From NCBI GenBank assembly GCA_002269645.1, contig NIVC01004144.1, forward strand, positions 1 through 47,539: a stretch of DNA of 47,539 nt. The letters are read 5' to 3'. Position numbers and translations under genes: made by a program. The notes below the pieces were generated by a model. It did no database searches, was not told the origin of the DNA, and saw only the letters and a list, made by a program, of their open reading frames with translations. Source of the DNA: Macrostomum lignano. Taxonomy: Eukaryota. Every line of letters begins with the position of its first letter. The first letter of the stretch is position 1. Of this stretch, positions 3,291 through 32,555 are shown piece after piece.

Positions 3291-3605
3291 CGCAGGACCA
3301 CTTATCCTGTTATTCGCCAATGACGATGAGTTCATGCGCGATGTAGAATCGACAGCCAATAATGGCAACAAAAGTGAGTAGAAACGATTATATTTTATCA
3401 ATATATCTAAGATTCGCTTTTACGTTTGATTCAACAATAAAATGCTGCTACGCACGCAGTGTACAGCAGACAGAGCATAGAACAAACAACCAAATGGATT
3501 ATAGCTGGGTTGAACGAATTACACACAGCCGACTGGAATCAGGTTAGTCATTGTTGAGCATGTCATATTCTATATTATTACAGAATACACATCGCTGTTT
3601 ATTAG

Positions 3606-3609
<4 letters not shown>

Positions 3610-3696
<87 letters not shown>
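3610..3696. repeat. (CT)n microsatellite
   Basis: Direct reading of the sequence. Confidence 0.98.
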
Positions 3697-3962: not shown

Positions 3963-4302
3963 ATACGGAAAAAATGTAAAACAATAAAAAGAATGGCTCA
4001 CATTTGTAAATATAATTTTTTTAAACTGTATTATATTTCAAACGAAAATTTTAATCAGCTTATTGACAGTTATTATCCGTTGTTCGTATGCTGGTTCGAA
4101 TTTTTACTTTTTTTTCTGTTATATCGAATATAAATCGTGTATTCAGATTTGACTCCATTGAGCAAAGCTTTGACAAACAGACGCATACACGCACACACAC
4201 GCATCACTAGCAAAGCAACATTGACAATTATAATCACACACCGTTGGCATCTATTAGGACAAGTTTGACAGTTAATTAAGATTACTAATTTGTTGATCTA
4301 TT
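3963..4302 (+). repeat. Dispersed duplicated block, copy 1 (copy 2 at 8800-9199; partial copy 3 at ~10305-10415)
   Basis: The block from atacggaaaaaatgtaaaacaataaaaa to gttaattaagattactaatttgttgatctatt is near-identical at 3963 and 8800. Both copies lead into the same minisatellite family. Confidence 0.93.
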
Positions 4303-4669
4303 GATGTGACCCGACTGACTGGTGTTGTGACCAAGTTGACTTGTGATGTGACCTTGGTGACTGGTGTTGTGACCACGTTGACTTGTGATGTGACCCGACT
4401 AAATAGTAATGTGACCATGTTGACTGGTGATGTGACCCAGTTGAATGGTGAGGTGACCCGACTGTCTAGTGATGTGACTCAGTTGAATTTTGATGTGACC
4501 CGACTGACTGGTGTTGTGACCACGTTGACTTGTGATGTGACCCGACTATCTAGTGATGTGACCATGTTGACTGGTGATGTGACACAGTTGAATGGTGATG
4601 TGACCCGACTGTCTGGTGATGTGACTCAGTTGACTGTTGATGTGACCCGACTGACTGGTGATGTGACAA
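4303..4669 (+). repeat. 21-bp minisatellite (gatgtgacccgactgactggt-like, ~17 diverged copies)
   Basis: Period is 21 bp. The stop-free frame 4306-4731 reads as LTGDVTQ-type heptads. Confidence 0.95.
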
Positions 4670-5648
4670 CTTTGTATTGTATTTGTATTGTATTGTATTG
4701 TAGCGTATTGTACAACTTTGGGCTGGGTTAATTACCATAGAAGAAACTGTAGCGATAGAATGCTTAGAGGAGATTAGTGCAAACAAACGGCATTGAATAA
4801 CGAACTTGAACTTAAATAAACTATAGTGCATCTCAGTGCGTATTGTTAATTACGTATTGTTAATTACGCATCTCAATGCGTATTGTACTTGAATTCATAT
4901 TGCGTATTGTACTGCGCCGCCGCCGCCGCCGCCATATTCGCCGATTCACAAGGCATCTCGACCGCCGCCAATGCACTCGCTCTCATCGATGTCGCAGTCG
5001 CCGTGTCTGGATCCTCGGGTTCATTAACGCCGAAGTCGCCGCATCTGCAGCCACAGTCGCTTTGGATGCCTGTCGTGACAATGCGTGTGCCCGGATACGA
5101 TTGATAGTATGCGAGCTGACACAACTATTAGAGCCACTGCTAGGAATCCTATTTAACCGGCGTCGTTGATGTGTCGGCGGAGTTGACAAATGATGTTCGC
5201 TCGACAACTGTGATGACGAAGATGCATCTGATACAATTTCGCAGTCGGAGCGCACCATCTGTTGACGTCGCCTTTTACAACTGGGTTTGCTCGTCGGCGA
5301 AGCAAACGACGCGCCATCTTGAACACTCGGCCCTGTGATAATTATTTGTAAAAAAGACGCTAATTTATACAATTTAATCCTTTCATTCAACAAATCAAGC
5401 AAACAAGCAATCAATCAATCAATCAATCAGTCAGTTCAAACGCTCATGTATAACAGACCTGTGTCTATCAGTCATTTGAACTAGTTAAGCTTAGATATAT
5501 TGATAAAATATAATCGTTTTCTACTCACTTTTATTGCCATTATTGGCTGTCTGCGACTTTGGCACTGTCGATGGCTCGTCAGCAGCGACAACAGCAGCAG
5601 CACCAGTAGCACCAGTAGCAGCATCAGCAGCAGCAGCAGCAGCAGCAA

Positions 5649-7126
5649 CAGGTATCCGAAGTTTGCAGAACAGTCGGCAACCGCTGCCGTCTCCTAGCGT
5701 GCCTCGCTGCCAGGTCGTGGGGCTGGTCTAAAGACAGTCTCCTAACTACCTTCAAAGCAATGCAACTCAGCATCCTGCACTACGCGTCACCAGCATGGCA
5801 ACCCTGGCTAGCAGACACCGCCATGTCTTATCTCCAACGCGCGCAGAACCAGGCACTCCGTATTGTCACAGGTCAGCTTCGCACAACCCCGGCTGAGGCT
5901 CTCCACCTCGAGGCTGGAGTGTGCACCGTCGCTACCATGCGCGACCAACTCTGCCTCGCGGCGTACGAAAAAGCGCTGCGCCTCCCGGAGGACCACCCGC
6001 GCCACCGCGCGGCCGCGGCCCAGGTTCCGCACCGCACGGCCAGAAACAGCTGGCGCCACCGCGCCCAGCAACTTCTGGCAAGAATGCCGGCAAACCTGGG
6101 CCGCCGCGAAGCCCTCCCACCGCTCCCCCGCTGCCCTTGGATCCACCTGGCTGCGGGCTGGACCGTGACGCGCTTGCTGTCGACCGTCGCCGTCAGACCC
6201 AGGCAGGCTGCTCACCCGACGACGCAACAAGACAGCGCTGACTTAGCCAGGGACCAGGCGATATCATCCGTCCGCACGGCGAACGCTGACCTGGTTCTTT
6301 ACACGGACGGCTCCGCCGAAGGCGGCTGCTCCGAGGGGGGCGCAGCATGCGTGGTCACCCGCCGCGGCGACCCCGCCTCCCCGCAGGTCGTCGACACCGT
6401 CGCTGCCCGCGGCGCCTCGCCGACCTGCAGCTTCGACGAGGAGCGCCGCGCCCTCGGACTGGCCATGGCCTGGCTCAACGACCATCAAGTCACCGGCCGA
6501 GTGTTGATCTGCTCCGACAGTCGCGCACTGCTCGACGCCCTCATGAGCATCGTGCCGAGATGCTCGCTCCCGGACTTGAACTGCCGGGTTGCCTCCCTCA
6601 CTCTCCAGTGGATCCCAGCGCACTGCGGCATCCCTGGTAACGAGATGGCGGACGCAGCCGCCAAGAATGCCGCATCCATCGCTGGCGCGCCAGCGAGCAC
6701 CTCGTACAGCAGCGCGGTGGCAGCGGTCAGGCGCGAGATCGGCGACCCGCCCCTGACCCACGCCCGCACGATTTCTGTGTACCGCGCGCTCAACCGGCAA
6801 CGCGACCGCGCCGAACTTCAGAATCGTCAGGATGCCGTCCTCCTGGCGAGGCTCCGCGCGGGCCACTGCAGCCTTCTCCGCGCGTACAGTCGCATCGTCA
6901 ACCCGACGGCGGACCCCATTTGCCCACGCTGCGAGGGGGGCCCGGAAGACCTCGAGCACTGGCTCGGTTGCCCGGCCCTCCGGAGGCTCCGCCTCGAGCT
7001 GTTCGACGAGGACACCCTGGACCCCGGGATTCTGACCGTCGCCCCGCGAGGTCGGTGGCGCTTGCGAGGCGAAGCCTCTGACTCCCTCGGCGCCTTTGCC
7101 CCCAACAACAACAACAACAACAACAA

Positions 7127-7130
<4 letters not shown>
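5649..7130 (+). mobile_element. 5'-truncated non-LTR retrotransposon (I/Ingi/Nimb-like): RT C-terminus, RNase H, Cys/His knuckle and (CAA)n tail
   Basis: The in-frame translation from 5649 is QVSEVCRTVGNRCRLLACLAARSWGWSKDSLLTTFKAMQLSILHYASPAW. RNase H motifs YTDGS, FDEERRAL, ICSDS and WIPAHCGIPGNEMAD are present, as is CPRCEGGPEDLEHWLGCP. The (CAA)n tail spans 7103-7130. GC content is much higher than in the flanks. Confidence 0.92.
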
Positions 7131-7183
<53 letters not shown>

Positions 7184-7663
7184 CAGCAATAACAACAACA
7201 GCATCAGTAGCAGCATGGGCATCGGTCGGCACAGACGCGCGGTTTGCATCGTCAGACTGTTGTCCAGTTGCTGTTGATAACGCAGCATCTAGATCGCAGT
7301 CGGCCGCGATTTTTCGAGTTTCAACAGCATCGTGTACATTGTCGGCCGAGGTATCCGATGCATGCACCAGTTTAGCGTACAGGTCGTTTACGATGGGTTC
7401 TAAACGAGTCGGTGTAGTTCGTTGAGCACCATCTCCACAACCGGCAACGTTGTTACTAGGCGCATTATTAACAACAACAGCAGCTGTCGACGACAATTGT
7501 TGGTCAAGTCGATGCCGCGTATTGGCAATACTGAAATCGAGGGGTTGCACCTGCTCGTAGGCATCATCGAGGACAGGGCTCGCCTTCTCGTCAGCATTGG
7601 ACAAGTCGTCGTCGACACTCGAAGCGGCATCGGCGGCGGCGGCGGCGGCGGCGTTACGCATAC

Positions 7664-7840
7664 TAAGATCCAGAGGTTGATCATAGAATGCAGCCGAATG
7701 CATGCTAAGATCCAGAGGTTGATCATAGAATGCAGCCGAATGCATGCTAAGATCCAGAGGTTGATCATAGAATGCAGCCGAATGCATGCTAAGATCCAGA
7801 GGTTGATCATAGAATGCAGCCGAATGCATGCTAAGATCCA
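7664..7840 (-). repeat. 42-bp coding tandem repeat (PLDLSMHSAAFYDQ unit; five PLDLS motifs)
   Basis: taagatcc recurs at 7664, 7706, 7748, 7790 and 7832, in frame within ORF 6264-7961. Confidence 0.95.
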
Positions 7841-8012
7841 ACGGTCGATCTTCAGCAGCAATTTCGTCACCGTCATTGTTGTTGTTGTTGTTGCTGTTGT
7901 TGATGTTGGCAGAGCGACGACACATTGTCGATTTGCGAATTGACTGTTGTTGTTGCTGCATGCTGATACACAGTAGATTGAAATAACTATGATAATAGAG
8001 AACTAGAGAACT

Positions 8013-8135
<123 letters not shown>

Positions 8136-9232
8136 TATAGAATCAGATTCTATTCGTCCTTTTTTCGAGCTAGTTAGTCGAGCTTTAAGTAGAGGGTTGA
8201 TGTCAAAATTACTCAGAGATATGTCTATGTCTTAACCTATTCAGATAATAGCCTGTCCAATGTGTACAGGATGCAATTGACAAATCGAGCGCACCACAAG
8301 TAGAGTTTTAAGTCAAAAAAATGTCTATGTGTTAACATAGTCTGATAATAAACTGTCTATGTTGTACAGTGTGCACTTGATAGATCGAGCGCGCATGTAC
8401 CAAGGAGTTCTATAGCTAGTATAATGGATTGGAATCTTGCTTTACTTTTATATGCAATATTATGTGCAAATATAGAATCCAACTGACTAACAGACAATTG
8501 TCTATGGTTCAACCTACGATAAAGCCACCCCAGAGTGTATATTATAGCATTCTATGAGTGTATGCGCCCTGTATAGGAAACTTTTGTCTATGGGTTGAAT
8601 GGAAATTCAAGCGTTTCCAAGTACAGTTTAACTTTGAAGATCAATTGAAACAGTATAGCTGCACTTGTATACTGAATCAATCATTTAATGGTGTTTATGA
8701 CTTTAACTGATTTACTAATGCCTACAAGAATGCATAGTTTGAATCAAAAGCTAGTTTGTGTTTTCCTCAGGCAGATTTTCCAAGATAGAAATGTCCAAGA
8801 TACGGAAAAAATGTAAAACAATAAAAAAGAATGGCTCGCATTTGTAAATTTAATTTTTATCTGAAACTATATTATATTTCAAACGAAAATTTTAATCAGC
8901 TTATTGACAGTTATTATCCGTTGTTCGTATGCTGGTTTGAATTTTTACTTTTTTTTCTGTTATATCGAATATAAATCGTGTACTCAGATTTGACTCAATT
9001 GAGCAAAGCTTTGACAAACAGACGCATACACGCGCACACACACGCATACATACATACATACATATATACTTACACAATGTTAGCAGTTTTGATTACATTC
9101 ATTAGCAAATCAACATTGACAATTAGAAACACACACATATTTGGCATCTATGAGGACAAGTTTGACAGTTAATTAAGATTACTAATTTGTTGATCTATTA
9201 CAGCCAAATTATTGTGTTGAGTGAGAATGAGA

Positions 9233-10296
9233 TTGACTGGTGATGTGACCGTGTTGACAGGTGATGTGAATATGTTCACTAGTGATGTGACCAAATTGAA
9301 TGGTGATGTGACACAGTTAAATGGTGATGTGACCCAGTTGAATGGTGATGTGACGAAGTTGAATGGTGATGTGACCCAGTTGAATGGTGATGTGACGAAG
9401 TTGAATGGTGATGTGACCCTGACTGACTGGTGATGTGACACAGAATGACTGGTGATGTAACCAAGTTGAATGGTTATCTGACCAAGTTGAATGGTTATCT
9501 GACCCAGTTGAATGGTGATGTGACCCAGTTGAATGGTGATGTGACCCAGACTGAATGGTGTTGTGACCCATACTGACTAGTGATGTGACCCAGTTGAATG
9601 GTGATGTGACCCAGACTGACTGGTGATATGACCCATACTGACTGGTGATATGACACAGACTGAATGGTGATGTGACCCAGGCTGACTGGTGATGTGACTC
9701 AGGCTGACTGGTGATGTGACTCAGGCTGAATGGTGATGTGACCCAGGCTGACTGGTGATGTGACCCAGGCTGACTGGTGATGTGACCCAGACTGAATGGT
9801 GATATGACACAGACTAAATGGTGATGTTACCCATACTGACTGGTGATGTGACCCCGACTGAATGGTGATGTGACCCATACTGAATGGTGATGTTACCCAT
9901 ACTGACTGGTGATGTGACCCATACTGAATGGTGATGTGACCCATACTGAATGGTGATGTTACCCATACTGACTGGTGATGTGACCCATACTGACTGGTGA
10001 TGTGACCCAGGCTGACTGGTGATGTGACTCAGGCTGACTGATGATGTGACCCAGGCTGAATGGTGATGTGACACATACTGACTGGTGATGTGACCCAGAC
10101 TGAATGGTGATGTGACCCATACTGACTGGTGATGTGACTCAGGCTGACTGGTGATGTGACTCAGGCTGACTGGTGATGTGACTCAGGCTGACTGTTGATG
10201 TGACTCAGGCCGACTGGTGATGTGACTTAGGCTGACTGGTGATGTGACCCAGGCTGACTGGTGATGTGACCCAGATTGATATGTGATGTGACCACA
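9233..10296 (+). repeat. Minisatellite of the same family as 4303-4669; 21-bp units switch to 22-bp units
   Basis: Period is 21 at 9301/9322 and 22 at 10141/10163. Confidence 0.95.
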
Positions 10297-10353
10297 GTGA
10301 CTAGTTAGCAGATTTGATTACAGTCACCAGCAAACCAACATTGACAATTATAA

Positions 10354-10354
<1 letters not shown>

Positions 10355-10385
<31 letters not shown>
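10355..10385. repeat. (CA)n microsatellite
   Basis: Direct reading of the sequence. Confidence 0.95.
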
Positions 10386-10387
<2 letters not shown>

Positions 10388-10987
10388 TTGGTACCTATGA
10401 AGACAAGTTTGACAGCAACCGGCTCTGGCTAAAACCTTGACCCATCTGAATTTGTGTGTGTGTGTACATGTCTTTGACAAAGTTTTGGCGTCAACAACTA
10501 GCAACGGAATATTGGTCAATAAACCACTTAAATATTCATACAAACAAATCTTATAACGCATGCATAACGGTAACGGCATAATCTGTACACATACAATTAT
10601 TTAACAATAATATGTACAAACCATGAGCAAAAATATAATCGCATAAATAAACAATATATATGTACAAACGATTAAAAAATGGCAGAAGCAACATATAAAA
10701 CATTGTGATCTTTCCTTACTTACTAATTAATATACAGCTTTCGGTTGGTTTATCTCAATCAATTTTCCAATTTTAACAGCCAGTCATGTGCACCAGTCGT
10801 GTGCATGTTCACCAGTGTGCATCGACCATACTCAACAATGCAGACAGTCATGTTCACCCGCATGCACCGACCATGCTCGCCACTACAAACAGCCATGTTC
10901 ACTCGAACCGAACCGTCGACCACGAGCCTCGAATAGTCACCAGTGACTCGAGCCGTCCCGTTGGAAGTAGGGAAGATATAGCGCATT

Positions 10988-13007
10988 TCATCGGGCACTT
11001 GCACTTTCTTCGAGCGCAGGCGTGACAAACTTTTCGCACCATAGAATGAACGATTTACACAATCGTCTCGGTGACAACAGTGTTGCACCACGGCCTCGCG
11101 AACCTTGCTTGTGTGGCACCTCGCTTGGTGGTAATCGCGTTATGACGGTATCCATACTGGAGCCTTTGTTTTTTAACGCGTCTTCGAGGTGATGCCGACA
11201 CAGATAGATCCACGGCAATACACGATTGCTATGGAATATTGCAGTGCCCAAGAATGCCAGCTCGCGACTGATTGGCATTATGAAATCGCGCCATCTTCCT
11301 CGCGGAGAATTCGTTTGATTGACCAGCCGCGCAATGTCGGACCAGGTACCTTCTGTTGGTAAATCTGACCAGGAATGTTTCTCGATCATATTAACCAATT
11401 TCAGTAGCCTGTTTCTTACGAGGTCATACTCTTCGACAGACAGGAACAACTCGGTGTATTTTTGTTGTCGCGCATCATCATTCAGATGGTACCGATTGTC
11501 CTGTTGTCGGCTGACTCGTCCGAGTTGCGCCTGTGTGTATTATAAGAGAAGCAAAAATTCATCTTTATGTATCATCATTATCATCATTATCGTTCTTATC
11601 ATCATCAGCATCGTCATCACCACCATCATATGCACAATCATAGTTTATAGTTCTAATCTACACATAATATAGATTATAATTTCAAAAATATAATCAAGCA
11701 AACAAACAAACAAACAAACAGGTACTTACGTAGACAGCATCGATTCGAGGTATTAGAAAAGCAGACACTGTCTTTCGATGGTATAGATTGCTGGGCAACT
11801 TCTTTACTCCGCTGGCTATTCCATGTAATAGTCTGGCCGCGGTAGTGACGTCATCTGCTGCGCCAGTGAATACGATCACGGCAAGTGGATCATCAGTCTC
11901 GCTCACACTGCTGTCGGAACCACCCGCATTGTCATCCGCTTCGTCCTGAATGTCGGCATCGGAACCAGATGACACATCGGCGGCTTGGTCGTTATCAGGC
12001 GGCGCTGGTACGACAATGACTCTGCCTTGCTGCTCCGAATCTGCAGTTTCATTGTCCTTGGCACACTGTTCGATCGCGTCCAATAAGCTGGCAACAATTT
12101 CGTCGTCTGATGTCAGATAGCCTGTTGGTTGTTTAATCGTGAAACAACACCCATTTTTACTCTATAATTAGTACACATCAATAATTGTACAATAATATTA
12201 TGCAATCCTATCTACTGATAGAGAAAAACTGAACGATTAAATATTATTACCTTGAAATTGGCGCACCTTTCGTATCATCGCATCGGTGATGCTGTTGCCG
12301 ACTGAATCACTGTTAGACGATTGATGAACACGGTCGTCGCCAGATGGTCTCTGTTTGAATCGATCCGATCCAACTTGGGTGCCATCGTCTGTGATGTACA
12401 ACTCTTCGACAGACTCGACGACACACGGTCTAACATGATCAGGTGCGGTATTGGTCGACCCGGTTGCGAACTTAGCTGCTGATTGGCGTTCGGTGTTCGA
12501 TGCCGGGGTCACCGTTTGAGCGCGGCGGCGTTCACTGTTGACTGTCTTGGTCGCAGTTTGAAAATTGGAATCCCTGCTTGGTCCAACGTCTACACCGTCG
12601 AGTAAACCACTTGTAGACGGACCAGCTGATAAACTGGCAACCGGTAGTTCAGCAGTCTGTTGAGCAATCACATCTGTCGGGCGTGCGTTTGTTGCGTCAG
12701 GCTTTCGCTTGTATGATCGTTTTATATGTCTTTCGATACATCGAACGACCCGATGGCAATGTGGACACATTGTCATGCCATATGTGTCACCATCGCGCTG
12801 CAGCCTTACCGCCTTCCAGACAGCAATCGCCCTAACAAATATTGGCAACTCGGAAGATGGACCATTCCCTTCTTCCACTGTAGCCAAGTCGAAATTGCGG
12901 ACGAATTCTATATGACGTCTTACTAGATGACGCGCCATACTCCGCTAACTAAACAACTGTGCGCAAACAGGACACGCCGCGTTGTCGTTACGGTGATTGT
13001 CGGCCAT
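10988..13007 (-). pseudogene. Three-exon gene with two spaced C2H2-like fingers, an acidic linker and an unknown C-terminal domain. Exons 13007-12251, 12121-11730, 11530-10988
   Basis: Junction G/GTAATA..caacAG/GC is phase 1 and TAC/GTAAGT..acacAG/GCG is phase 0; together they join three listed ORFs in frame (540 aa from ATG 12938). Upstream ATG 13007 gives CPVCAQLFS*RSMARHLVRRH with TAG at 12947-12945. The second finger is CPHCHRVVRCIERHIKRSY. Confidence 0.75.
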
Positions 13008-16340: not shown

Positions 16341-17687
16341 CGAGGTGTATTCAAAAAGTTCTTTTCGGTGCCCTACAAAACTGAACACAAAACAACTGGA
16401 ACTATGAAAACACTGTTAGATTGCTTAACATGATTCGGTCACTCAACATATTCACCGCCAATGTCTTTGCACTTCTGCCAGCGATTTACCAGGCCTCTGA
16501 TTCCGGAACTCACACCACTCGCGTCCGTTTGGCGAACAGCTTGATTGCATGCAGCCTCAATGTGCTCGACGCTGTCGAATCGAATGCCCCGAAGGTGCTT
16601 CTTCACAGATGGAAATAAGAAGAAGTCGCACGGCGACAAATCAGGCGAATAGGCTGGATGTTGGAGCACTTCCCATCCCCATTTGCTCAGGAGTTCCACG
16701 ACGTTGTGCTTGCGATGTGCTGGCGCATTGTCGTGCAGCAGGATCACGCCAGATTCCAGCAGATCAGGGCGCTTCTTTCGTATTGCTGGGCGCAGCTTCT
16801 CCTGCAGAATCCACTTGTAGTAGTCCCCATTGACGGTGGTTCCTTGTGGGACTGCCCAGTTCAGCAGGATTCCTTGGGAATCAAAAAAACATGACGTGCA
16901 TGATCTTCATCGCGCCCTGCTTCCTGATGGCCTTCTGAGGTCTTGGAGAATGTGCTGGAAGCCATTCGGCAGACTGGGCCTTTGTCTCAGGATCCCAGCT
17001 GTAAACCCACGTCTCGTCTCCAGCTACAATTCTTGATAGAAAATCCTCCCCTTCTCGATGGAACCGACGCAGGTGGCTGCTTGAAGCCACAGTTCGCTGC
17101 ATCTTTTGCTCACCTGTCAGCAGGTGTGGCACCCACTTGCAAAACTTTTTCTGCAGGTGAAGACGCTCCGTCAGAATGGTGTGGACGCTTCCTACTGACA
17201 CACCAACGTCTTCTGCCAACTCTTCGCAAGTCCGTCGCCGATCATCATCCAGGAGCTCTTGCACTTTCTTCACAACAGTCTCGTTGGTTGCAGTCATCGG
17301 CCTTCCAGAGCGATCATTGTCCTCAACGCTCTCTCTTCCCTCAGCGAACAGCCGGTACCATTTTCGAACTGTCTGCTCAGTTGGTGCACATTTGCCAAGC
17401 ACTTGCTGAAGCTCCCTAAACATATCCGGTGGCTTTTTTCCTTGCAGAAACTGAAACTTCATCAAGCTTCGAACGTCTTGCTTTGAAAATGATTCAGCCA
17501 TGGCCAAGAAATTGAGTGGTAGCTGATAGAAATGTTCGCTGCTCTAACATAGTTGCAAACTGAGACTTAAAACCCTAGGAACGTTTAGGCCATAGACATA
17601 ACTTGGTGAAATCGCTAAAATTCTGTTTACAAGGCTTTTTAAAAATAAATGCCAAAGGACCGAAAAGAACTTTTTGAATACACCTCG
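16341..17687 (-). mobile_element. Full-length mariner (DD34D) DNA transposon, 1347 bp
   Basis: Perfect 29-bp TIRs cgaggtgtattcaaaaagttcttttcggt at 16341-16369 and 17659-17687, flanked by TA on both sides. Confidence 0.97.
16439..17507 (-). CDS. Mariner transposase, split by one +1 frameshift in a T7 run at ~16883-16889 (355 aa if corrected)
   Basis: Motifs WVPHLL, GDETW, HDNAPAH and YSPDLSPCD are present, with 34 residues between the 2nd and 3rd Asp. Removing one T gives MFFDSQGILLNWAVPQGTTVNGDYYKWIL...ILLHDNA. Confidence 0.93.
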
Positions 17688-18914: not shown

Positions 18915-19585
18915 TCCGCCAGAAAACTCATGAATTAACTGACTGCTGCACAGATAGCGGCTGCTGCTGCTGCTGCAGCTTGGCAGCAGCAAGTGAACCA
19001 AATGACGGATGCAGCGGCGAGATCAGAATGCTCGCTGCTGATCGTTAAAGCGCATTCTTGTCTCTTAGGCATGTCGCTGGCGTTGCTGACTTCAGAATCT
19101 GCGAGGAAAAGAAATCAATTAAGATAGGCTTGCTTTAGTAATCATTAATAGGCTATAAAGGAACCCTTTAATAGAACGTGTTCAACTAATGCTGGGTCTG
19201 TTTTGAAAAGTCAGAACTCAGAAGTAGTCGCGATTAGAATCAGTATTGTCCCAATAAGTGCGACCCAACAAATGCTGTTCAAAAAATAGGCCTGGCTGCA
19301 ATGTCCCAATAAATGCCCAACAAATTACTAGCCTTGAGCTAGGCTGGGCTGTGTTTACTATTCTTTGCGTTTGTAGCTTGTGTCCCAACAATGCCACTGA
19401 GATTGTTGCATTGCTTTTGAATTGTGCTCTACCAAGTAACACAAGTACTCTGGTGTACAATACTTCTACAGCAGATAATACTCACCCAAAACAGATCGTC
19501 TCTTTCTCTTTAATCCTGTGCCGGACGGGTTTTCTTCAGATCCACCAGAAAATTCACAAATAGACTGACTGCCTGCACGGATAGC

Positions 19586-19619
<34 letters not shown>

Positions 19620-20239
19620 GCTGCTGCTGCGGCTTGTGAGCAGCAAGTGAACCAAATGACGGATGCAGCGGCGAGATCAGAATGCTCGCTGCTGATCGTT
19701 AAAGCGCATTCTTGTCTCTTAGGCATGTCGCTGGCGTTGCTGACTTCAGAATCTGCGAGGAAAAGAAATCAATTAAGATAGGCTTGCTTTAGTAATCATT
19801 AATAGGCTATAAAGGAACCCTTTAATAGAACGTGTTCAACTAATGCTGGGTCTGTTTTGAAAAGTCAGAACTCAGAAGTAGTCGCGATTAGAATCAGTAT
19901 TGTCCCAATAAGTGCGACCCAACAAATGCTGTTCAAAAAATAGGCCTGGCTGCAATGTCCCAATAAATGCCCAACAAATTACTAGCCTTGAGCTAGGCTG
20001 GGCTGTGTTTACTATTCTTTGCGTTTGTAGCTTGTGTCCCAACAATGCCACTGAGATTGTTGCATTGCTTTTGAATTGTGCTCTACCAAGTAACACAAGT
20101 ACTCTGGTGTACAATACTTCTACAGCAGATAATACTCACCCAAAACAGATCGTCTCTTTCTCTTTAATCCTGTGCCGGACGGGTTTTCTTCAGATCCACC
20201 AGAAAATTCACAAATAGACTGACTGCCTGCACGGATAGC

Positions 20240-20281
<42 letters not shown>

Positions 20282-20890
20282 GCGCTTGTGAGCAGCAAGT
20301 GAACCAAATGACGGATGCAGCGGCGAGATCAGAATGCTCGCTGCTGATCGTTAAAGCGCATTCTTGTCTCTTAGGCATGTCGCTGGCGTTGCTGACTTCA
20401 GAATCTGCGAGGAAAAGAAATCAATTAAGATAGGCTTGCTTTAGTAATCATTAATAGGCTATAAAGGAACCCTTTAATAGAACGTGTTCAACTAATGCTG
20501 GGTCTGTTTTGAAAAGTCAGAACTCAGAAGTAGTCGCGATTAGAATCAGTATTGTCCCAATAAGTGCGACCCAACAAATGCTGTTCAAAAAATAGGCCTG
20601 GCTGCAATGTCCCAATAAATGCCCAACAAATTACTAGCCTTGAGCTAGGCTGGGCTGTGTTTACTATTCTTGCGTTTGTAGCTTGTGTCCCAACAATGCC
20701 ACTGAGATTGTTGCATTGCTTTTGAATTGTGCTCTACCAGGTAACACAAGTACTCTGGTGTACAATACTTCTACAGCAGATAATACTCACCCAAAACAGA
20801 TCGTCTCTTTCTCTTTAATCCTGTGCCGGACGGGTTTTCTTCAGATCCACCAGAAAATTCACAAATAGACTGACTGCCTGCACGGATAGC

Positions 20891-20932
<42 letters not shown>

Positions 20933-21540
20933 GGCTTGTGAGCAGCAAGTGAACCAAATGACGGATGCAGCGGCGAGATCAGAATGCTCGCTGCTGATCG
21001 TTAAAGCGCATTCTTGTCTCTTAGGCATGTCGCTGGCGTGCTGACTTCAGAATCTGCGAGGAAAAGAAATCAATTAAGATAGGCTTGCTTTAGTAATCAT
21101 TAATAGGCTATAAAGGAACCCTTTAATAGAACGTGTTCAACTAATGCTGGGTCTGTTTTGAAAAGTCAGAACTCAGAAGTAGTCGCGATTAGAATCAGTA
21201 TTGTCCCAATAAGTGCGACCCAACAAATGCTGTTCAAAAAATAGGCCTGGCTGCAATGTCCCAATAAATGCCCAACAAATTACTAGCCTTGAGCTAGGCT
21301 GGGCTGTGTTTACTATTCTTTGCGTTTGTAGCTTGTGTCCCAACAATGCCACTGAGATTGTTGCATTGCTTTTGAATTGTGCTCTACCAGGTAACACAAG
21401 TACTCTGGTGTACAATACTTCTACAGCAGATAATACTCACCCAAAACAGATCGTCTCTTTCTCTTTAATCCTGTGCCGGACGGGTTTTCTTCAGATCCAC
21501 CAGAAAATTCACAAATAGACTGACTGCCTGCACGGATAGC

Positions 21541-21579
<39 letters not shown>

Positions 21580-22187
21580 GGCTTGTGAGCAGCAAGTGAA
21601 CCAAATGACGGATGCAGCGGCGAGATCAGAATGCTCGCTGCTGATCGTTAAAGCGCATTCTTGTCTCTTAGGCATGTCGCTGGCGTTGCTGACTTCAGAA
21701 GCTGCGAGGAAAAGAAATCAATTAAGATAGGCTTGCTTTAGTAATCATTAATAGGCTATAAAGGAACCCTTTAATAGAACGTGTTCAACTAATGCTGGGT
21801 CTGTTTTGAAAAGTCAGAACTCAGAAGTAGTCGCGATTAGAATCAGTATTGTCCCAATAAGTGCGACCCAACAAATGCTGTTCAAAAAATAGGCCTGGCT
21901 GCAATGTCCCAATAAATGCCCAACAAATTACTAGCCTTGAGCTAGGCTGGGCTGTGTTTACTATTCATTGCGTTTGTAGCTTGTGTCCCAACAATGCCAC
22001 TGAGATTGTTGCATTGCTTTTGAATTGTGCTCTACAGGTAACACAAGTACTCTGGTGTACAATACTTCTACAGCAGATAATACTCACCCAAAACAGATCG
22101 TCTCTTTCTCTTTAATCCTGTGCCAGACGGGTTTTCTTCAGATCCACCAGAAAATTCACAAATAGACTGACTGCCTGCACGGATAGC

Positions 22188-22223
<36 letters not shown>

Positions 22224-22831
22224 GGCTTGTGAGCAGCAAGTGAACCAAATGACGGATGCAGCGGCGAGATCAGAATGCTCGCTGCTGATCGTTAAAGCGC
22301 ATTCTTGTCTCTTAGGCATGTCGCTGGCGTTGCTGACTTCAGAAGCTGCGAGGAAAAGAAATCAATTAAGATAGGCTTGCTTTAGTAATCATTAATAGGC
22401 TATAAAGGAACCCTTTAATAGAACGTGTTCAACTAATGCTGGGTCTGTTTTGAAAAGTCAGAACTCAGAAGTAGTCGCGATTAGAATCAGTATTGTCCCA
22501 ATAAGTGCGACCCAACAAATGCTGTTCAAAAAATAGGCCTGGCTGCAATGTCCCAATAAATGCCCAACAAATTACTAGCCTTGAGCTAGGCTGGGCTGTG
22601 TTTACTATTCTTTGCGTTTGTAGCTTGTGTCCCAACAATGCCACTGAGATTGTTGCATTGCTTTTGAATTGTGCTCTACCAGGTAACACAAGTACTCTGG
22701 TGTACAATACTTCTACAGCAGATAATACTCACCCAAAACAGATCGTCTCTTTCTCTTTAATCCTGTGCCGACGGGTTTTCTTCAGATCCACCAGAAAATT
22801 CACAAATAGACTGACTGCCTGCACGGATAGC

Positions 22832-22864
<33 letters not shown>

Positions 22865-23471
22865 GGCTTGTGAGCAGCAAGTGAACCAAATGACGGATGC
22901 AGCGGCGAGATCAGAATGCTCGCTGCTGATCGTTAAAGCGCATTCTTGTCTCTTAGGCATGTCGCTGGCGTTGCTGACTTCAGAAGCTGCGAGGAAAAGA
23001 AATCAATTAAGATAGGCTTGCTTTAGTAATCATTAATAGGCTATAAAGGAACCCTTTAATAGAACGTGTTCAACTAATGCTGGGTCTGTTTTGAAAAGTC
23101 AGAACTCAGAAGTAGTCGCGATTAGAATCAGTATTGTCCCAATAAGTGCGACCCAACAAATGCTGTTCAAAAAATAGGCCTGGCTGCAATGTCCCAATAA
23201 ATGCCCAACAAATTACTAGCCTTGAGCTAGGCTGGGCTGTGTTTACTATTCTTGCGTTTGTAGCTTGTGTCCCAACAATGCCACTGAGATTGTTGCATTG
23301 CTTTTGAATTGTGCTCTACCAGGTAACACAAGTACTCTGGTGTACAATACTTCTACAGCAGATAATACTCACCCAAAACAGATCGTCTCTTTCTCTTTAA
23401 TCCTGTGCCGACGGGTTTTCTTCAGATCCACCAGAAAATTCACAAATAGACTGACTGCCTGCACGGATAGC

Positions 23472-23507
<36 letters not shown>

Positions 23508-24114
23508 GGCTTGTGAGCAGCAAGTGAACCAAATGACGGATGCAGCGGCGAGATCAGAATGCTCGCTGCTGATCGTTAAAGCGCATTCTTGTCTCTTAGG
23601 CATGTCGCTGGCGTTGCTGACTTCAGAAGCTGCGAGGAAAAGAAATCAATTAAGATAGGCTTGCTTTAGTAATCATTAATAGGCTATAAAGGAACCCTTT
23701 AATAGAACGTGTTCAACTAATGCTGGGTCTGTTTTGAAAAGTCAGAACTCAGAAGTAGTCGCGATTAGAATCAGTATTGTCCCAATAAGTGCGACCCAAC
23801 AAATGCTGTTCAAAAAATAGGCCTGGCTGCAATGTCCCAATAAATGCCCAACAAATTACTAGCCTTGAGCTAGGCTGGGCTGTGTTTACTATTCTTGCGT
23901 TTGTAGCTTGTGTCCCAACAATGCCACTGAGATTGTTGCATTGCTTTTGAATTGTGCTCTACAGGTAACACAAGTACTCTGGTGTACAATACTTCTACAG
24001 CAGATAATACTCACCCAAAACAGATCGTCTCTTTCTCTTTAATCCTGTGCCGGACGGGTTTTCTTCAGATCCACCAGAAAATTCACAAATAGACTGACTG
24101 CCTGCACGGATAGC

Positions 24115-24158
<44 letters not shown>

Positions 24159-25397
24159 GTGAGCAGCAAGTGAACCAAATGACGGATGCAGCGGCGAGAT
24201 CAGAATGCTCGCTGCTGATCGTTAAAGCGCATTCTTGTCTCTTAGGCATGTCGCTGGCGTGGCTGACTTCAGAATCTGCGAGGAAAAGAAATCAATTAAG
24301 ATAGGCTTGCTTTAGTAATCATTAATAGGCTATAAAGGAACCCTTTAATAGAACGTGTTCAACTAATGCTGGGTCTGTTTTGAAAAGTCAGAACTCAGAA
24401 GTAGTCGCGATTAGAATCAGTATTGTCCCAATAAGTGCGACCCAACAAATGCTGTTCAAAAAATAGGCCTGGCTGCAATGTCCCAATAAATGCCCAACAA
24501 ATTACTAGCCTTGAGCTAGGCTGGGCTGTGTTTACTATTCTTGCGTTTGTAGCTTGTGTCCCAACAATGCCACTGAGATTGTTGCATTGCTTTTGAATTG
24601 TGCTCTACCAAGTAACACAAGTACTCTGGTGTACAATACTTCTACAGCAGATAATACTCACCCAAAACAGATCGTCTCTTTCTCTTTAATCCTGTGCCGG
24701 ACGGGTTTTCTTCAGATCCACCAGAAAATTCACAAATAGACTGACTGCCTGCACGGATAGCGGCTGCTGCTGCTGCTGCTGCTGCTGCGGCTTGTGAGCA
24801 GCAAGTGAACCAAATGACGGATGCAGCGGCGAGATCAGAATGCTCGCTGCTGATCGTTAAAGCGCATTCTTGTCTCTTAGGCATGTCGCTGGCGTTGCTG
24901 ACTTCAGAAGCTGCGAGGAAAAGAAATCAATTAAGATAGGCTTGCTTTAGTAATCATTAATAGGCTATAAAGGAACCCTTTAATAGAACGTGTTCAACTA
25001 ATGCTGGGTCTGTTTTGAAAAGTCAGAACTCAGAAGTAGTCGCGATTAGAATCAGTATTGTCCCAATAAGTGCGACCCAACAAATGCTGTTCAAAAAATA
25101 GGCCTGGCTGCAATGTCCCAATAAATGCCCAACAAATTACTAGCCTTGAGCTAGGCTGGGCTGTGTTTACTATTCTTTGCGTTTGTAGCTTGTGTCCCAA
25201 CAATGCCACTGAGATTGTTGCATTGCTTTTGAATTGTGCTCTATCAGGTAACACAAGTACTCTGGTGTACAATACTTCTACAGCAGATAATACTCACCCA
25301 AAACAGATCGTCTCTTTCTCTTTAATCCTGTGCCAGACGGGTTTTCTTCAGATCCACCAGAAAATTCACAAATAGACTGACTGCCTGCACGGATAGC

Positions 25398-25430
<33 letters not shown>

Positions 25431-25475
25431 GGCTTGTGAGCAGCAAGTGAACCAAATGACGGATGCAGCGGCGAG
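18915..25475. repeat. Tandem array of ~640-655-bp units (~10 units, 11 variable (CTG)n tracts)
   Basis: Units are near-identical. Marker gactgactgcctgcacggatagcgg recurs about every 650 bp from ~19563 to ~25375. Confidence 0.98.
19486..19752 (-). CDS. Representative symmetric phase-1 exon of the 650-bp array (DSEVSNASDMPKRQ...polyAla...GTGLKRKRRSVL)
   Basis: Acceptor tttcttttcctcgcAG and donor TTG G/GTGAGT. The exon is 267 nt (a multiple of 3) and only phase 1 is open. Confidence 0.55.
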
Positions 25476-29990: not shown

Positions 29991-30471
29991 CCGAGGGAGC
30001 ACCTTGCCGGCCGCGTCGGTGCTAGAGGCCGACATCAGCCCGACGGACCTTCGCAAAACGACCCTATCTGCCAGTTTATAGTAGTTTTGTCAAAGAGAAA
30101 AAAAAATTAATATTTTATTTGTTATTGGGTATTTATGGTAATTATTATAGTTTCAGAAATCAATTTTTTGCTTTGGTTTATTTAATTTTATTTTTAACAG
30201 AAAATTATTTGTCCTCCTGCCAAATTTTTTCTTCCTGCCGCCTCTGCCGCCGCGTCCGCCCGTGGTGCTCGTGAGTCCTTGTCGTTACTCCTGAAATGTT
30301 GGTTTACTAAAAGATTATACATTCTGTAACATAATATATGATTACATCATAATTGCTATAAGCTAAAGCTGATGTCTTGCTAATTGGGAGTCTGCTTTTG
30401 GTGTTTGTTTGCCTCATAAAAAAAGAAATACAAACTGAATATGTCAGTTTCAAGGTGCCGGGTTGAATCAC

Positions 30472-32555
30472 TCATAATGACCAATGGGTTTGTATTTTGC
30501 GTTTTTTCGAAAGTCCGGTACCCTGAGCCAATCGGAGAGACTGACAAGTATGGACTTTCCGCAAGGCACGCGTTGCCCCCCCCCTTCCCCCCCCAGAGAC
30601 CTGCGAGAATGCCAGAAAACAACTCGTAGTTGCACAGCGCGTATTTAAGTTGCGGGTTTACCTTGCGCTTCCGCTTGGCAGACCGGGCCTCCCTCGCCGG
30701 CTGCGTTTGCAGCCGTCGCTTCTCCTTCTGCGTCAGCGGCGGCGGCGGCGGCGGCGGGGGTGTCGGCGAATGCGGCGGCGGCGGAGTTGTCGGCGGCGGT
30801 GGCGGAGGTGTCGGCGGCGGTGGCGGAGATGCCGGCGGCGGCAGCGGGGGTGTCGGCGGATGCGGAGGTGTCGGCGAATGCGGCGGCGGTGGCGGAGGTG
30901 TCGGCGGCGGTGGCGGAGATGTCAGCGGCGGTGGCGGAGGTGTCTGCGGCGGTGGCGGAGATGTCAGCGGCGGTGGCGGAGGTGTCGGCGGCGGTGGCGG
31001 AGATGCCGGCGGCGGCAGCGGAGGTGTCGGCGGATGCGGAGGTGTCGGCGAATGCGGCGGAGGTGGCGGAGGTGTCGGCGGCGGTGGCGGAGTTGTCAGC
31101 GGCGGTGGCGGAGGTGTCGGCGGCGGTGGCGGAGATGCCGGCGGCGGCAGCGGAGGTGTCGGCGGATGCGGAGGTGTCGGCGGATTTGGAGGTGTCGGCG
31201 AATGCGGCGGCGGTGGCGGAGGTGTCGGCGGCGGTGGCGGAGGTGTCGGCGGCGGAGGTGTCGGCGGCGGTGGCGGAGATGTCGGTGGCGGAGGTGTCGG
31301 CGGCGGTGGTGGAGATGTCGGCGGCGGAAGTGTCGGCGGCGGTGGCGGAGATGTCGGCGGCGGCAGCGGAGGTGTCGGCGGATGCGGAGGTGTTGCTGCT
31401 GCTGCGGCGGCTGGTGCTGCTGCTGCTGCGGCTGGTGTTGCTGCTGCTGCTGCTGCTGCTCCGGCGCCGGCGGTCGCGGCGGCAGTGTGCAACAGTGATT
31501 CCGAGGAAAGTGGAAGTTTATTTTTTTTAGTAAAGAGCGCTAATTGACAATTACTTGGAAATCGAAAATATTTGTACAAATTTTAGTTTCTTATATCACT
31601 TTAGTCACAGTTGCGTCTGATACATCCTACTTCTAAGTAAGAACAGTTTAAATCCTTAAATCTGTTCTAATGCACATTGCCAGGCAATGGCAAAGAAAAA
31701 ATTGCCAAACAATGAAAAATTAGCTTTCAGCAAAAACTCTCAGCATTTAAGCTGTCAGCATTTAAGCTCTCAGCATTTAAGCTCTCAGCATTTAAGCTCT
31801 CAGCATTTAAGCTCTCAGCATTTAAGCTCTCAGCATTTAAGCTCTCACACAGTGTTCACCGAGTAAATACTCATCACCTACCAGCTGGTGGCAGCTCCAA
31901 CACTTGGCGCAGCACTTGGCGCAGCTGCGCAGCATCTAGGCGGTCGACGACCGTTGCCGCCTGATGCTGCTGCGGCTGCTGCGGCTGCTGCGGCTGTTGC
32001 GGCTGCTCCAACTGCGGGGCGAGCGACCCCTGCACTATGGCCGGCAGGTTATTGAGGTCGCCCCCCCGCAGCTCCACCCCGTGGGTCCAGAGGACAGAGC
32101 CGGCACCCACGCGCCAGTACATCCTCTGGAGTAAAATGAAATGGGATGGGTGGGATACAGCTCTCAGGTCAGCAAGAGAGCGAGAGTGTGAGCGAAAGCG
32201 AGAGTGATATCGAGAGAGCGAGAGCATGAGAGCGAGAGCGAGAGTGAGAGCAAGAGCGAGAGAGCGAGAGCAAGTGGCAAGGAAAGGGAAATAATAACAT
32301 AGGATGAGTACTTACGGAGTTCCCTCCAGAGTATTGGTAGGTCTGCGCGGCGTGCCGACGGCCGCCTGAAGCACCTCCGACGCCCAGAAGACATGGGCAC
32401 AACCTATCCCGCACCTGTGCGGGTCGGCCCTGCATGTTTACCCAGATGGCAAATTTGCCAACTGGGCAAACAAACTGAGCACCGACAGGTGCGGGCTCGA
32501 TTGTGACAGCACCCATGCCTTCTGGGCCTGCTTGCATGTAATCTTCGACCTTCAT
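30472..32555 (-). CDS. Putative four-exon gene: unknown N-terminal domain, QQP repeats, SAP-like helix, long Pro-rich repeat and basic tail. Exons 32555-32316, 32125-31882, ~31455-30662, 30600-30472
   Basis: TCC/GTAAGT..ttttactccAG/AGG is a phase 0 in-frame junction. Donor G/GTAGGT lies at 31881. AAG/GTAAAC..cattctcgcAG bounds a 61-bp intron, and the final exon is 43 codons to TGA. The acceptor of exon 3 is uncertain. Confidence 0.55.
30725..31460. repeat. GC-rich compound minisatellite (ggcggcggtggcggaggtgtc variants) encoding the Pro-rich tract on the minus strand
   Basis: All unit variants are multiples of 3, so ORFs stay open in several frames. Confidence 0.93.
31737..31846. repeat. 15-bp minisatellite (ctctcagcatttaag), ~7 copies, intronic
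   Basis: Direct reading of the sequence. Confidence 0.95.

Follow-up and report, generated by a model that had tools for sequence, protein, structure and literature searches.

A 42-bp coding minisatellite with five PLDLS motifs in a probable orphan gene interrupted by a retrotransposon: a possible multivalent ligand of CtBP

Contig NIVC01004144.1 of the Macrostomum lignano assembly GCA_002269645.1 (positions 1 to 47,539, the window from here on) contains on its minus strand an open reading frame (ORF) in which a 42-bp minisatellite encodes five exact copies of PLDLS, the pentapeptide by which many proteins dock on the co-repressor CtBP. The frame is probably part of a young, disordered and lineage-restricted gene that is disrupted in this copy by a retrotransposon of the kind without long terminal repeats (non-LTR) lying antisense within it. 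A real protein-coding gene, now or until recently, is the reading that we consider rather likely for this locus. More tentatively, and by analogy with RAI2, we propose that its product, if translated and nuclear, would be a disordered orphan protein that sequesters or cross-links CtBP.

The PLDLS array and its reading frame

Tandem Repeats Finder (TRF) reported 4.4 copies of the 42-bp unit between 7658 and 7840 with 99% matches, and there are four full copies that depart from the consensus by at most one mismatch, when none is expected in shuffled sequence. The first-pass annotation had described five PLDLS motifs encoded by this unit and, after them, a diverged QPLDFS, and both the repeat analysis and the translation bear this description out. 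The five motifs are found on the minus strand at 7844-7830, 7802-7788, 7760-7746, 7718-7704 and 7676-7662, 14 residues apart, which leaves linkers of 9 residues. From the ATG at 7961-7959 the frame reads MQQQQQSIRKSTMCRRSANINNSNNNNNNDGDEIAAEDR, then PLDLSMHSAAFYDQ four times and then PLDLSMRNAAAAAAA; divided up otherwise, it reads MQQQQQ...EDRPLDLSMHSAAFYDQ, then PLDLSMHSAAFYDQ three times and then PLDLSMRNAAAA. Head-to-tail copies, a unit length divisible by three and an open frame give the array the anatomy of a coding minisatellite. The span originally assigned to the feature, 7400-7962, covers the start codon, the array and PLDFS but falls short of the whole gene (Table 1).

The proline codon of the diverged and older unit begins at 7544, 44 codons downstream of the array. 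When its context, DDAYEQVQPLDFSI, is compared with SAAFYD--QPLDLSM, nearly all the nucleotide differences correspond to third codon positions, in a comparison that is biased by the pairing having been picked at the peptide level. The residues that follow PLDFS, FSIANTR, were also considered as an eh1/Groucho-like motif and dropped, as they are without the I-L of FxIxxIL.

Within the array the three inner copies are identical in DNA and the edge copies are slightly diverged, indicating that the five-fold valency is young; identical inner copies with diverged edges are the usual picture of a recently expanded minisatellite. Compared with the core, the two edge copies differ at four positions. 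One of them changes Q to R just outside the motif, and the three found within PLDLS codons are all synonymous (CCT>CCG, CTG>TTG, AGC>AGT), which has a chance of about 0.02 given the synonymous fraction of 0.27 for these codons. The five-fold valency is not by itself evidence of selection, and the copy number of the array is likely to be variable between alleles.

In shuffled windows read in six frames the expected number of exact PLDLS is 0.13, or one in about every eight windows, so that one seed motif is unremarkable, and the five copies represent one kind of DNA event (slippage) and not five independent occurrences. The loose CtBP pattern, which we take to be P[LVIPME][DENS][LM][VASTRG], occurs here 0.29 times per 1000 random codons. 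All five PLDLS motifs fit this pattern and PLDFS does not, having F at position 4 where L or M is usual; PLDFS is probably a weaker CtBP site or no site. The identification of the repeated motif with the CtBP docking site made in the first-pass annotation is sound for PLDLS, its canonical form, but not for PLDFS, outside the usual definition. What goes beyond chance is the diverged QPLD[LF]S unit, the restriction of the motif changes to synonymous ones and the coding signature that the unique sequence around the array shows.

This signature is clear in two overlapping stretches. The non-repeat segment 7216-7657 (442 nucleotides, 147 codons) has no stop codon in the PLDLS frame and 2 to 11 in each of the other five, and only 0.3% of its shuffles are open. 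The repeat-free 360 nucleotides at 7251-7610 give a period-3 signal of 8.0, compared with 0.5-0.7 in intergenic sequence and 14.5 in the retrotransposon ORF, and their fraction of RNY (purine, any base, pyrimidine) codons is 0.46 in frame vs 0.18 and 0.23 out of frame.

Gene model, retrotransposon insert and searches for relatives

Only the first ~277 of the 565 codons of the ORF (6264-7961) belong to the host, the rest being a retrotransposon read in antisense, and the 565-residue ORF was rejected as one protein on this account. The insert contains an RNase_H domain detected by Pfam (E-value 7e-11), is 36-44% identical to proteins with reverse transcriptase (RT) and RNase H found in ENA metagenome contigs, one of them located beside immunoglobulin-domain genes, and is ~30% identical to mollusc, ant and tick proteins. 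Its alignment with a 632-residue RT and RNase H relative (42% identity) begins at residue 168 of the latter, indicating that the element is truncated at the 5' end and is without its 5' half. Three of the relatives have (CAA)n after the stop codon (L001, 2949-2996; L003, 2451-2500; L004, 4177-4210) and another, L002, ends in (GAC)n (11620-11660). Since relatives end in (CAA)n, the (CAA)9 at 7103-7129 is the element's own tail. The possibility that the PLDLS region is part of the retrotransposon was rejected, as it lies beyond this tail.

Both junctions of the insert fall in CAG/CAA repeats, and (CAG)n is found on its two sides (5613-5651 and 7130-7215). As these flanks read (GCT)n in the PLDLS frame, the element lies antisense inside a poly-Ala tract of the host. 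It is GC-rich and therefore open in antisense for ~290 codons, which explains why the ORF looked so long. The sequence CAGCAG... follows the tail here and in L003, and the 5' junction here is also in (CAG)n; this retrotransposon clade may prefer CAG/CAA repeats, often coding ones (poly-Q or poly-Ala). A 5'-truncated RT/RNase H copy with a simple-repeat 3' tail, inserted in a matching microsatellite, resembles the microsatellite-associated non-LTR retrotransposons, and target-specific integration into microsatellites is known in several lineages (PMC4640811). The difference is that the combination of a (CAA)n tail with a CAG/CAA-repeat target was seen here in five copies only.

With the insert left out, the join of 7130 to 5651 in the phase of the CAG repeat preserves the Ala frame, and the joined frame continues for 41 further codons to the donor AAAA/GTGAGT (exon end at 5529). 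The acceptor is TCACAG/ and exon 2 starts at 5332; its sole long open frame is the phase-compatible one. The three exon segments have a GC content of 0.51-0.55, compared with 0.287 for the intron and 0.36-0.40 for the flanks. The resulting two-exon model (Table 1) codes for a protein of 434 residues that is rich in Ala (21%), Ser (12%) and Asp (9%). One weak point of the model is that the boundaries of the retrotransposon cannot be fixed exactly within the triplet repeat. A piece of 65 bp that runs from the last part of exon 1 through the GTGAGT donor into the intron (5487-5551, minus strand) recurs in inverted orientation at a distance of 2.1 kb (3351-3414, plus strand), with 95% identity and flanks that cannot be aligned. 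This may be a paralogue in fragmentary form, or else a small repeat that by chance provides the donor.

Table 1. Features of the PLDLS locus and of the neighbouring repeats (positions in the window)
Feature	Position	Strand	Basis
Putative exon 2 in compatible phase: tail rich in Ser/Arg, with KRRR and RRR clusters; TGA stop at 4985-4983	4983-5332	-	
Putative intron, 196 nucleotides, GT...AG, GC 0.287	5333-5528	-	
Exon 1, downstream part, AVAAAAAAADAATGATGAAAVVAADEPSTVPKSQTANNGNK, ends at donor AAAA/GTGAGT	5529-5651	-	
Insert, a non-LTR retrotransposon cut short at its 5' end: last part of RT, RNase H, CCHC knuckle; GC 0.67	5652-7129	+	Pfam, relatives
Exon 1, upstream part: Gln/Asn-rich N-terminus, PLDLS array, PLDFS, unique acidic/Ala-rich stretch, poly-Ala (GCT)n	7130-7961	-	Open frame, period-3, RNY, GC 0.51
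(CAG)n on the plus strand = (GCT)n poly-Ala in the PLDLS frame; insertion tract	7130-7215	-	
Diverged unit QPLDFS, context DDAYEQVQPLDFSI, cf. SAAFYD--QPLDLSM	7530-7547	-	
Coding minisatellite, 42-bp unit PLDLSMHSAAFYDQ	7658-7850	-	TRF, copy count, translation
Start codon opening the PLDLS frame, with A at -3; no ATG, GTG or TTG lies between it and the upstream stop	7959-7961	-	
(AG)60 / (CT)60 microsatellite, ~50 nucleotides upstream of the start codon	8013-8132	.	
Satellite of ~645 bp, ten tandem copies, mostly 95-100% identical, unit length 635-654 bp	19000-25450		

In the allele with the insert, 277 native residues, among them the entire PLDLS array, are followed by nine Val derived from the antisense reading of (CAA)n and by ~280 residues of antisense transposon. 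The stop is at 6264-6266, and the exon junction lies ~735 nucleotides downstream of it. Exon 2, with its basic clusters, would remain untranslated in this allele, the transcript may be a target of nonsense-mediated decay, and the insertion of 1.48 kb probably makes it a null or altered allele. The uninterrupted 480-codon match to the relatives indicates that the insertion is probably recent, and alleles free of it may exist.

The first-pass annotation had missed the insert, the two-exon model and also the lack of homologues. Neither exon 1 (248 residues) nor exon 1b together with exon 2 (137 residues) had a match in a word-indexed search of 5.8 billion proteins, in which the candidate list of exon 1 was probably swamped by poly-A/N/Q words. 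An exhaustive HMMER search of 1.84 billion representative proteins gave 29 matches, all of them within query residues 16-138, and these were rejected as homologues, being unrelated proteins with ~14-residue repeats of their own that include PVDLS, PLDLG and PLDLK arrays. No record of the 565-residue ORF was found by exact look-up in the assembly index, no relative was found in JGI metagenome contigs using back-translated peptides (MHSAAFYD and three unique stretches), and the Pfam and PDB sequence searches of the 434-residue model returned nothing. A homologue with the PLDLS frame kept, recommended in the first-pass annotation as a check, was thus found in none of the collections searched, and within them the ORF is an orphan. 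Rfam and transfer RNA scans of the window were empty.

A Pfam run that covered the PLDLS ORF, the model protein and a further ten ORFs of the window detected only the RNase_H domain of the insert and mariner helix-turn-helix (HTH) domains. The host exons contain no Pfam domain of any sort, in agreement with the initial statement that no DNA-binding domain could be recognised in them. The protein had also been called otherwise disordered, and this is matched by an AlphaFold2 single-sequence model in which residues 1-99 have a predicted local distance difference test (pLDDT) score below 50, with a mean of 47, weak evidence for disorder since no alignment was available for the modelling. The motifs are predicted by this model to lie in an accessible disordered segment, and the unique Asp/Ala-rich stretch past the array is modelled as low-confidence helices.

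Possible CtBP docking and the competing explanations

PxDLS motifs dock in a cleft of CtBP, which forms tetramers, and PLDLS is the form of the motif found in E1A, CtIP and ZEB. Docking on CtBP is plausible from the sequence of the motifs. Each PLDLS would occupy, provided that the protein is made and is nuclear, the PxDLS cleft of one CtBP subunit, and a single tetramer could not serve all five of the closely spaced sites. The protein would therefore link one tetramer to another, and in this way sequester CtBP or polymerise it in the manner of RAI2; as there is no DNA-binding domain, it would act as a titrating or inactivating ligand rather than as a DNA-tethered repressor. The argument for nuclear localisation comes from the KRRR and RRR clusters, located in an exon that was joined by inference only.

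RAI2, which is disordered and has its two ALDLS motifs separated by 21 residues, binds two CtBP subunits simultaneously and stacks CtBP tetramers into filaments, giving rise to nuclear foci and relieving repression; a variant missing 11 residues of the linker keeps binding, stoichiometry and filament formation, and the two-motif binding brings only a ~five-fold gain in affinity and no cooperativity (PMC11187106). The general statement of the first-pass annotation that CtBP oligomers favour multivalent ligands is therefore better worded as multivalent ligands cross-linking CtBP tetramers, which is the documented effect, and not strong avidity. The predicted PLDLS protein resembles RAI2 in having no folded domain, repeated identical motifs and a short linker, here of 9 residues. 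On the other hand, RAI2 has two non-canonical ALDLS motifs and the protein described here five canonical PLDLS encoded by a near-perfect 42-bp DNA repeat, and RAI2 is conserved and experimentally characterised whereas our ORF is an orphan, interrupted by a transposon and known from sequence alone. Sequence homology to RAI2 was found neither in the exhaustive protein search, which gave repeat artefacts only, nor in the PDB sequence search.

A second domain-less example is MCRIP1, a protein of 97 residues in which the PxDLS motif is the sole feature and which competes CtBP off ZEB1 and Foxp1/2 (PMC6586819). It shares with the PLDLS protein the lack of any domain besides PxDLS, but it is conserved in vertebrates, has a single motif in place of a repeat array and is not homologous to the ORF. 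MCRIP1 is reportedly regulated by ERK. By analogy, the likeness to RAI2 and MCRIP1 would be functional and not familial. An identical or near-identical pentapeptide is also used for CtBP docking by conserved region 4 (CR4) of adenovirus E1A, CtIP, ZEB1/2, Kruppel and Knirps, and the ZEB proteins carry several CtBP motifs. All of these differ from the ORF in having DNA-binding or other functional domains and conserved motifs, and no tandem DNA repeats. At the DNA level the array resembles the coding variable number tandem repeats (VNTRs) of disordered proteins, with a unit that is a multiple of three, near-identical head-to-tail copies and more diverged edges, the difference being that VNTRs are defined by copy-number polymorphism and this array is known from one haplotype.

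Several observations weigh against a gene for a CtBP ligand. The window contains 89 tandem-repeat rows in the TRF output, and many of its ORFs of at least 110 residues are pure repeat read-through. The seed motif is of the kind expected by chance once in about eight such windows, and slippage multiplies whatever it strikes. The identity of the inner copies implies a five-fold valency that time has not tried. The coding signal of exon 2 is weak, and neither AATAAA nor ATTAAA was found after its stop codon down to coordinate 4200. The gene is disrupted in the sole copy seen, the orphan status of the ORF means that there is no evolutionary sign of conservation of the frame or of the motif, and the presence of CtBP in the source organism was inferred only from animal-type transposons.

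Several of these points also speak for there being no gene here at all. The frame would then be a chance one, running through triplet repeats in decay ((CAA/CAG)n, (AAC)n, (GCC)n) and through the minisatellite, with an accidental PLDLS that slippage copied five times and that is never translated. We regard this as possible but doubtful. It agrees with the abundance in the window of repeat-derived ORFs of 110-400 codons, with an array that is open in three of the six frames and with a retrotransposon that sits in the ORF without sign of counter-selection. Furthermore, a 22-bp satellite at 9623-10261 (minus strand), plainly non-coding, translates to a regular PVS[LM][GS] array that fits the loose CtBP pattern, a caution that minisatellites yield tandem motifs by chance. 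A GC-rich 21/42-bp repeat at 30380-31579 has the strongest period-3 signal of the window and holds a Pro/Thr-rich ORF of 399 codons on the minus strand together with overlapping plus-strand ORFs rich in Gly or Arg, indicating that repeat read-through alone can mimic coding periodicity. However, the signal at 7251-7610 comes from sequence free of repeats, is as strong in period-3 and RNY as that of a real ORF and is restricted to the PLDLS frame. A chance frame would not account either for the contrast in GC between exons and intron with consensus splice sites in compatible phase, or for motif changes that are synonymous only and accompanied by a diverged QPLD[LF]S unit.

Alternatively, the disordered protein could be real and its PLDLS motifs not act through CtBP, the expansion being neutral or structurally irrelevant, or serving another partner, and the resemblance coincidental. 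We consider this rather unlikely. Short linear motifs are prone to false positives, as the frequency of loose matches among random codons illustrates, the identical inner copies correspond to a recent expansion not yet tried by selection, PLDFS does not have the L/M that is usual at position 4, and the nuclear localisation depends on the inferred exon. Against this, PLDLS is no loose match but corresponds exactly to the motif in its high-affinity form, it lies within a segment predicted to be disordered, and the edge copies retain it through three synonymous changes. The spacing also fits the RAI2 linker-deletion variant that still cross-links CtBP.

The other option put forward in the first-pass annotation, a repressor adaptor whose non-repeat parts bind a DNA-bound factor so that the array recruits several CtBP molecules to the targets of this factor, seems to us very improbable: many PxDLS proteins do recruit CtBP to DNA (PMC6586819) and the low-confidence helices of the Asp/Ala-rich stretch could be a binding surface, but the protein, PDB and Pfam searches found no domain, homologue or partner-binding module, and in the closest studied domain-less PxDLS proteins, RAI2 and MCRIP1, the effect is to relieve repression by CtBP and not to direct it.

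Sponges or polymerisers of CtBP that have no domain are a concept already published, and what would be new in the cross-linking ligand proposed here is its pentavalent form, which an orphan gene would owe to a coding minisatellite. Provided that it is produced and does bind CtBP, the protein would be a counterpart of RAI2 and MCRIP1 that is independent of them and not homologous, indicating that domain-less PxDLS sponges arose repeatedly. Minisatellite slippage would then set the motif valency, tying a fast-mutating DNA feature to the dosage of a co-repressor, and the locus would be a clean example of how new disordered genes gain function via short motifs. A still more specific scenario, quite improbable in our estimation, is a young or de novo orphan gene in which one CtBP motif was multiplied by the minisatellite into a pentavalent tetramer cross-linker. 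The valency, and with it how strongly the co-repressor is sequestered, would follow the copy number of the VNTR and differ from one individual to another, and the insert allele would be a natural knock-out. The immediate value is modest, as this is a motif-level prediction for an orphan ORF split by a transposon in a repeat-rich genome.

Surroundings of the locus

The PLDLS locus is bracketed by direct repeats at 3969-4674 and 8807-10293, each composed of a ~330-bp head (94-96% identical) and a 21-22-bp satellite (TGATGTGACCC...), and a third partial copy of the head is located at 10304-10446, after the second satellite array. These bracketing repeats look like a satellite-carrying mobile element or a segmental duplication. 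In addition, the (AG)60 tract at 8013-8132 and a (TC)45 tract 4.3 kb away (3606-3696) form an inverted repeat of 90-106 nucleotides that flanks the whole locus.

Farther away, a fragment of a mariner/Mos1-type transposase at 16881-17507 (minus strand; HTH_48, E-value 7e-10) supports an animal origin of the window, as do the relatives of the non-LTR element. The ten near-identical 645-bp satellite units found at 19.0-25.4 kb differ mainly in an internal (GCT)10-16, a sign of active slippage in this genome and, indirectly, a hint that the PLDLS array may vary in copy number. Finally, three consecutive ORFs of 233, 129 and 153 residues at 10988-12938 (minus strand), with moderate period-3 and no Pfam match, may be exons of another orphan or transposon-derived gene.

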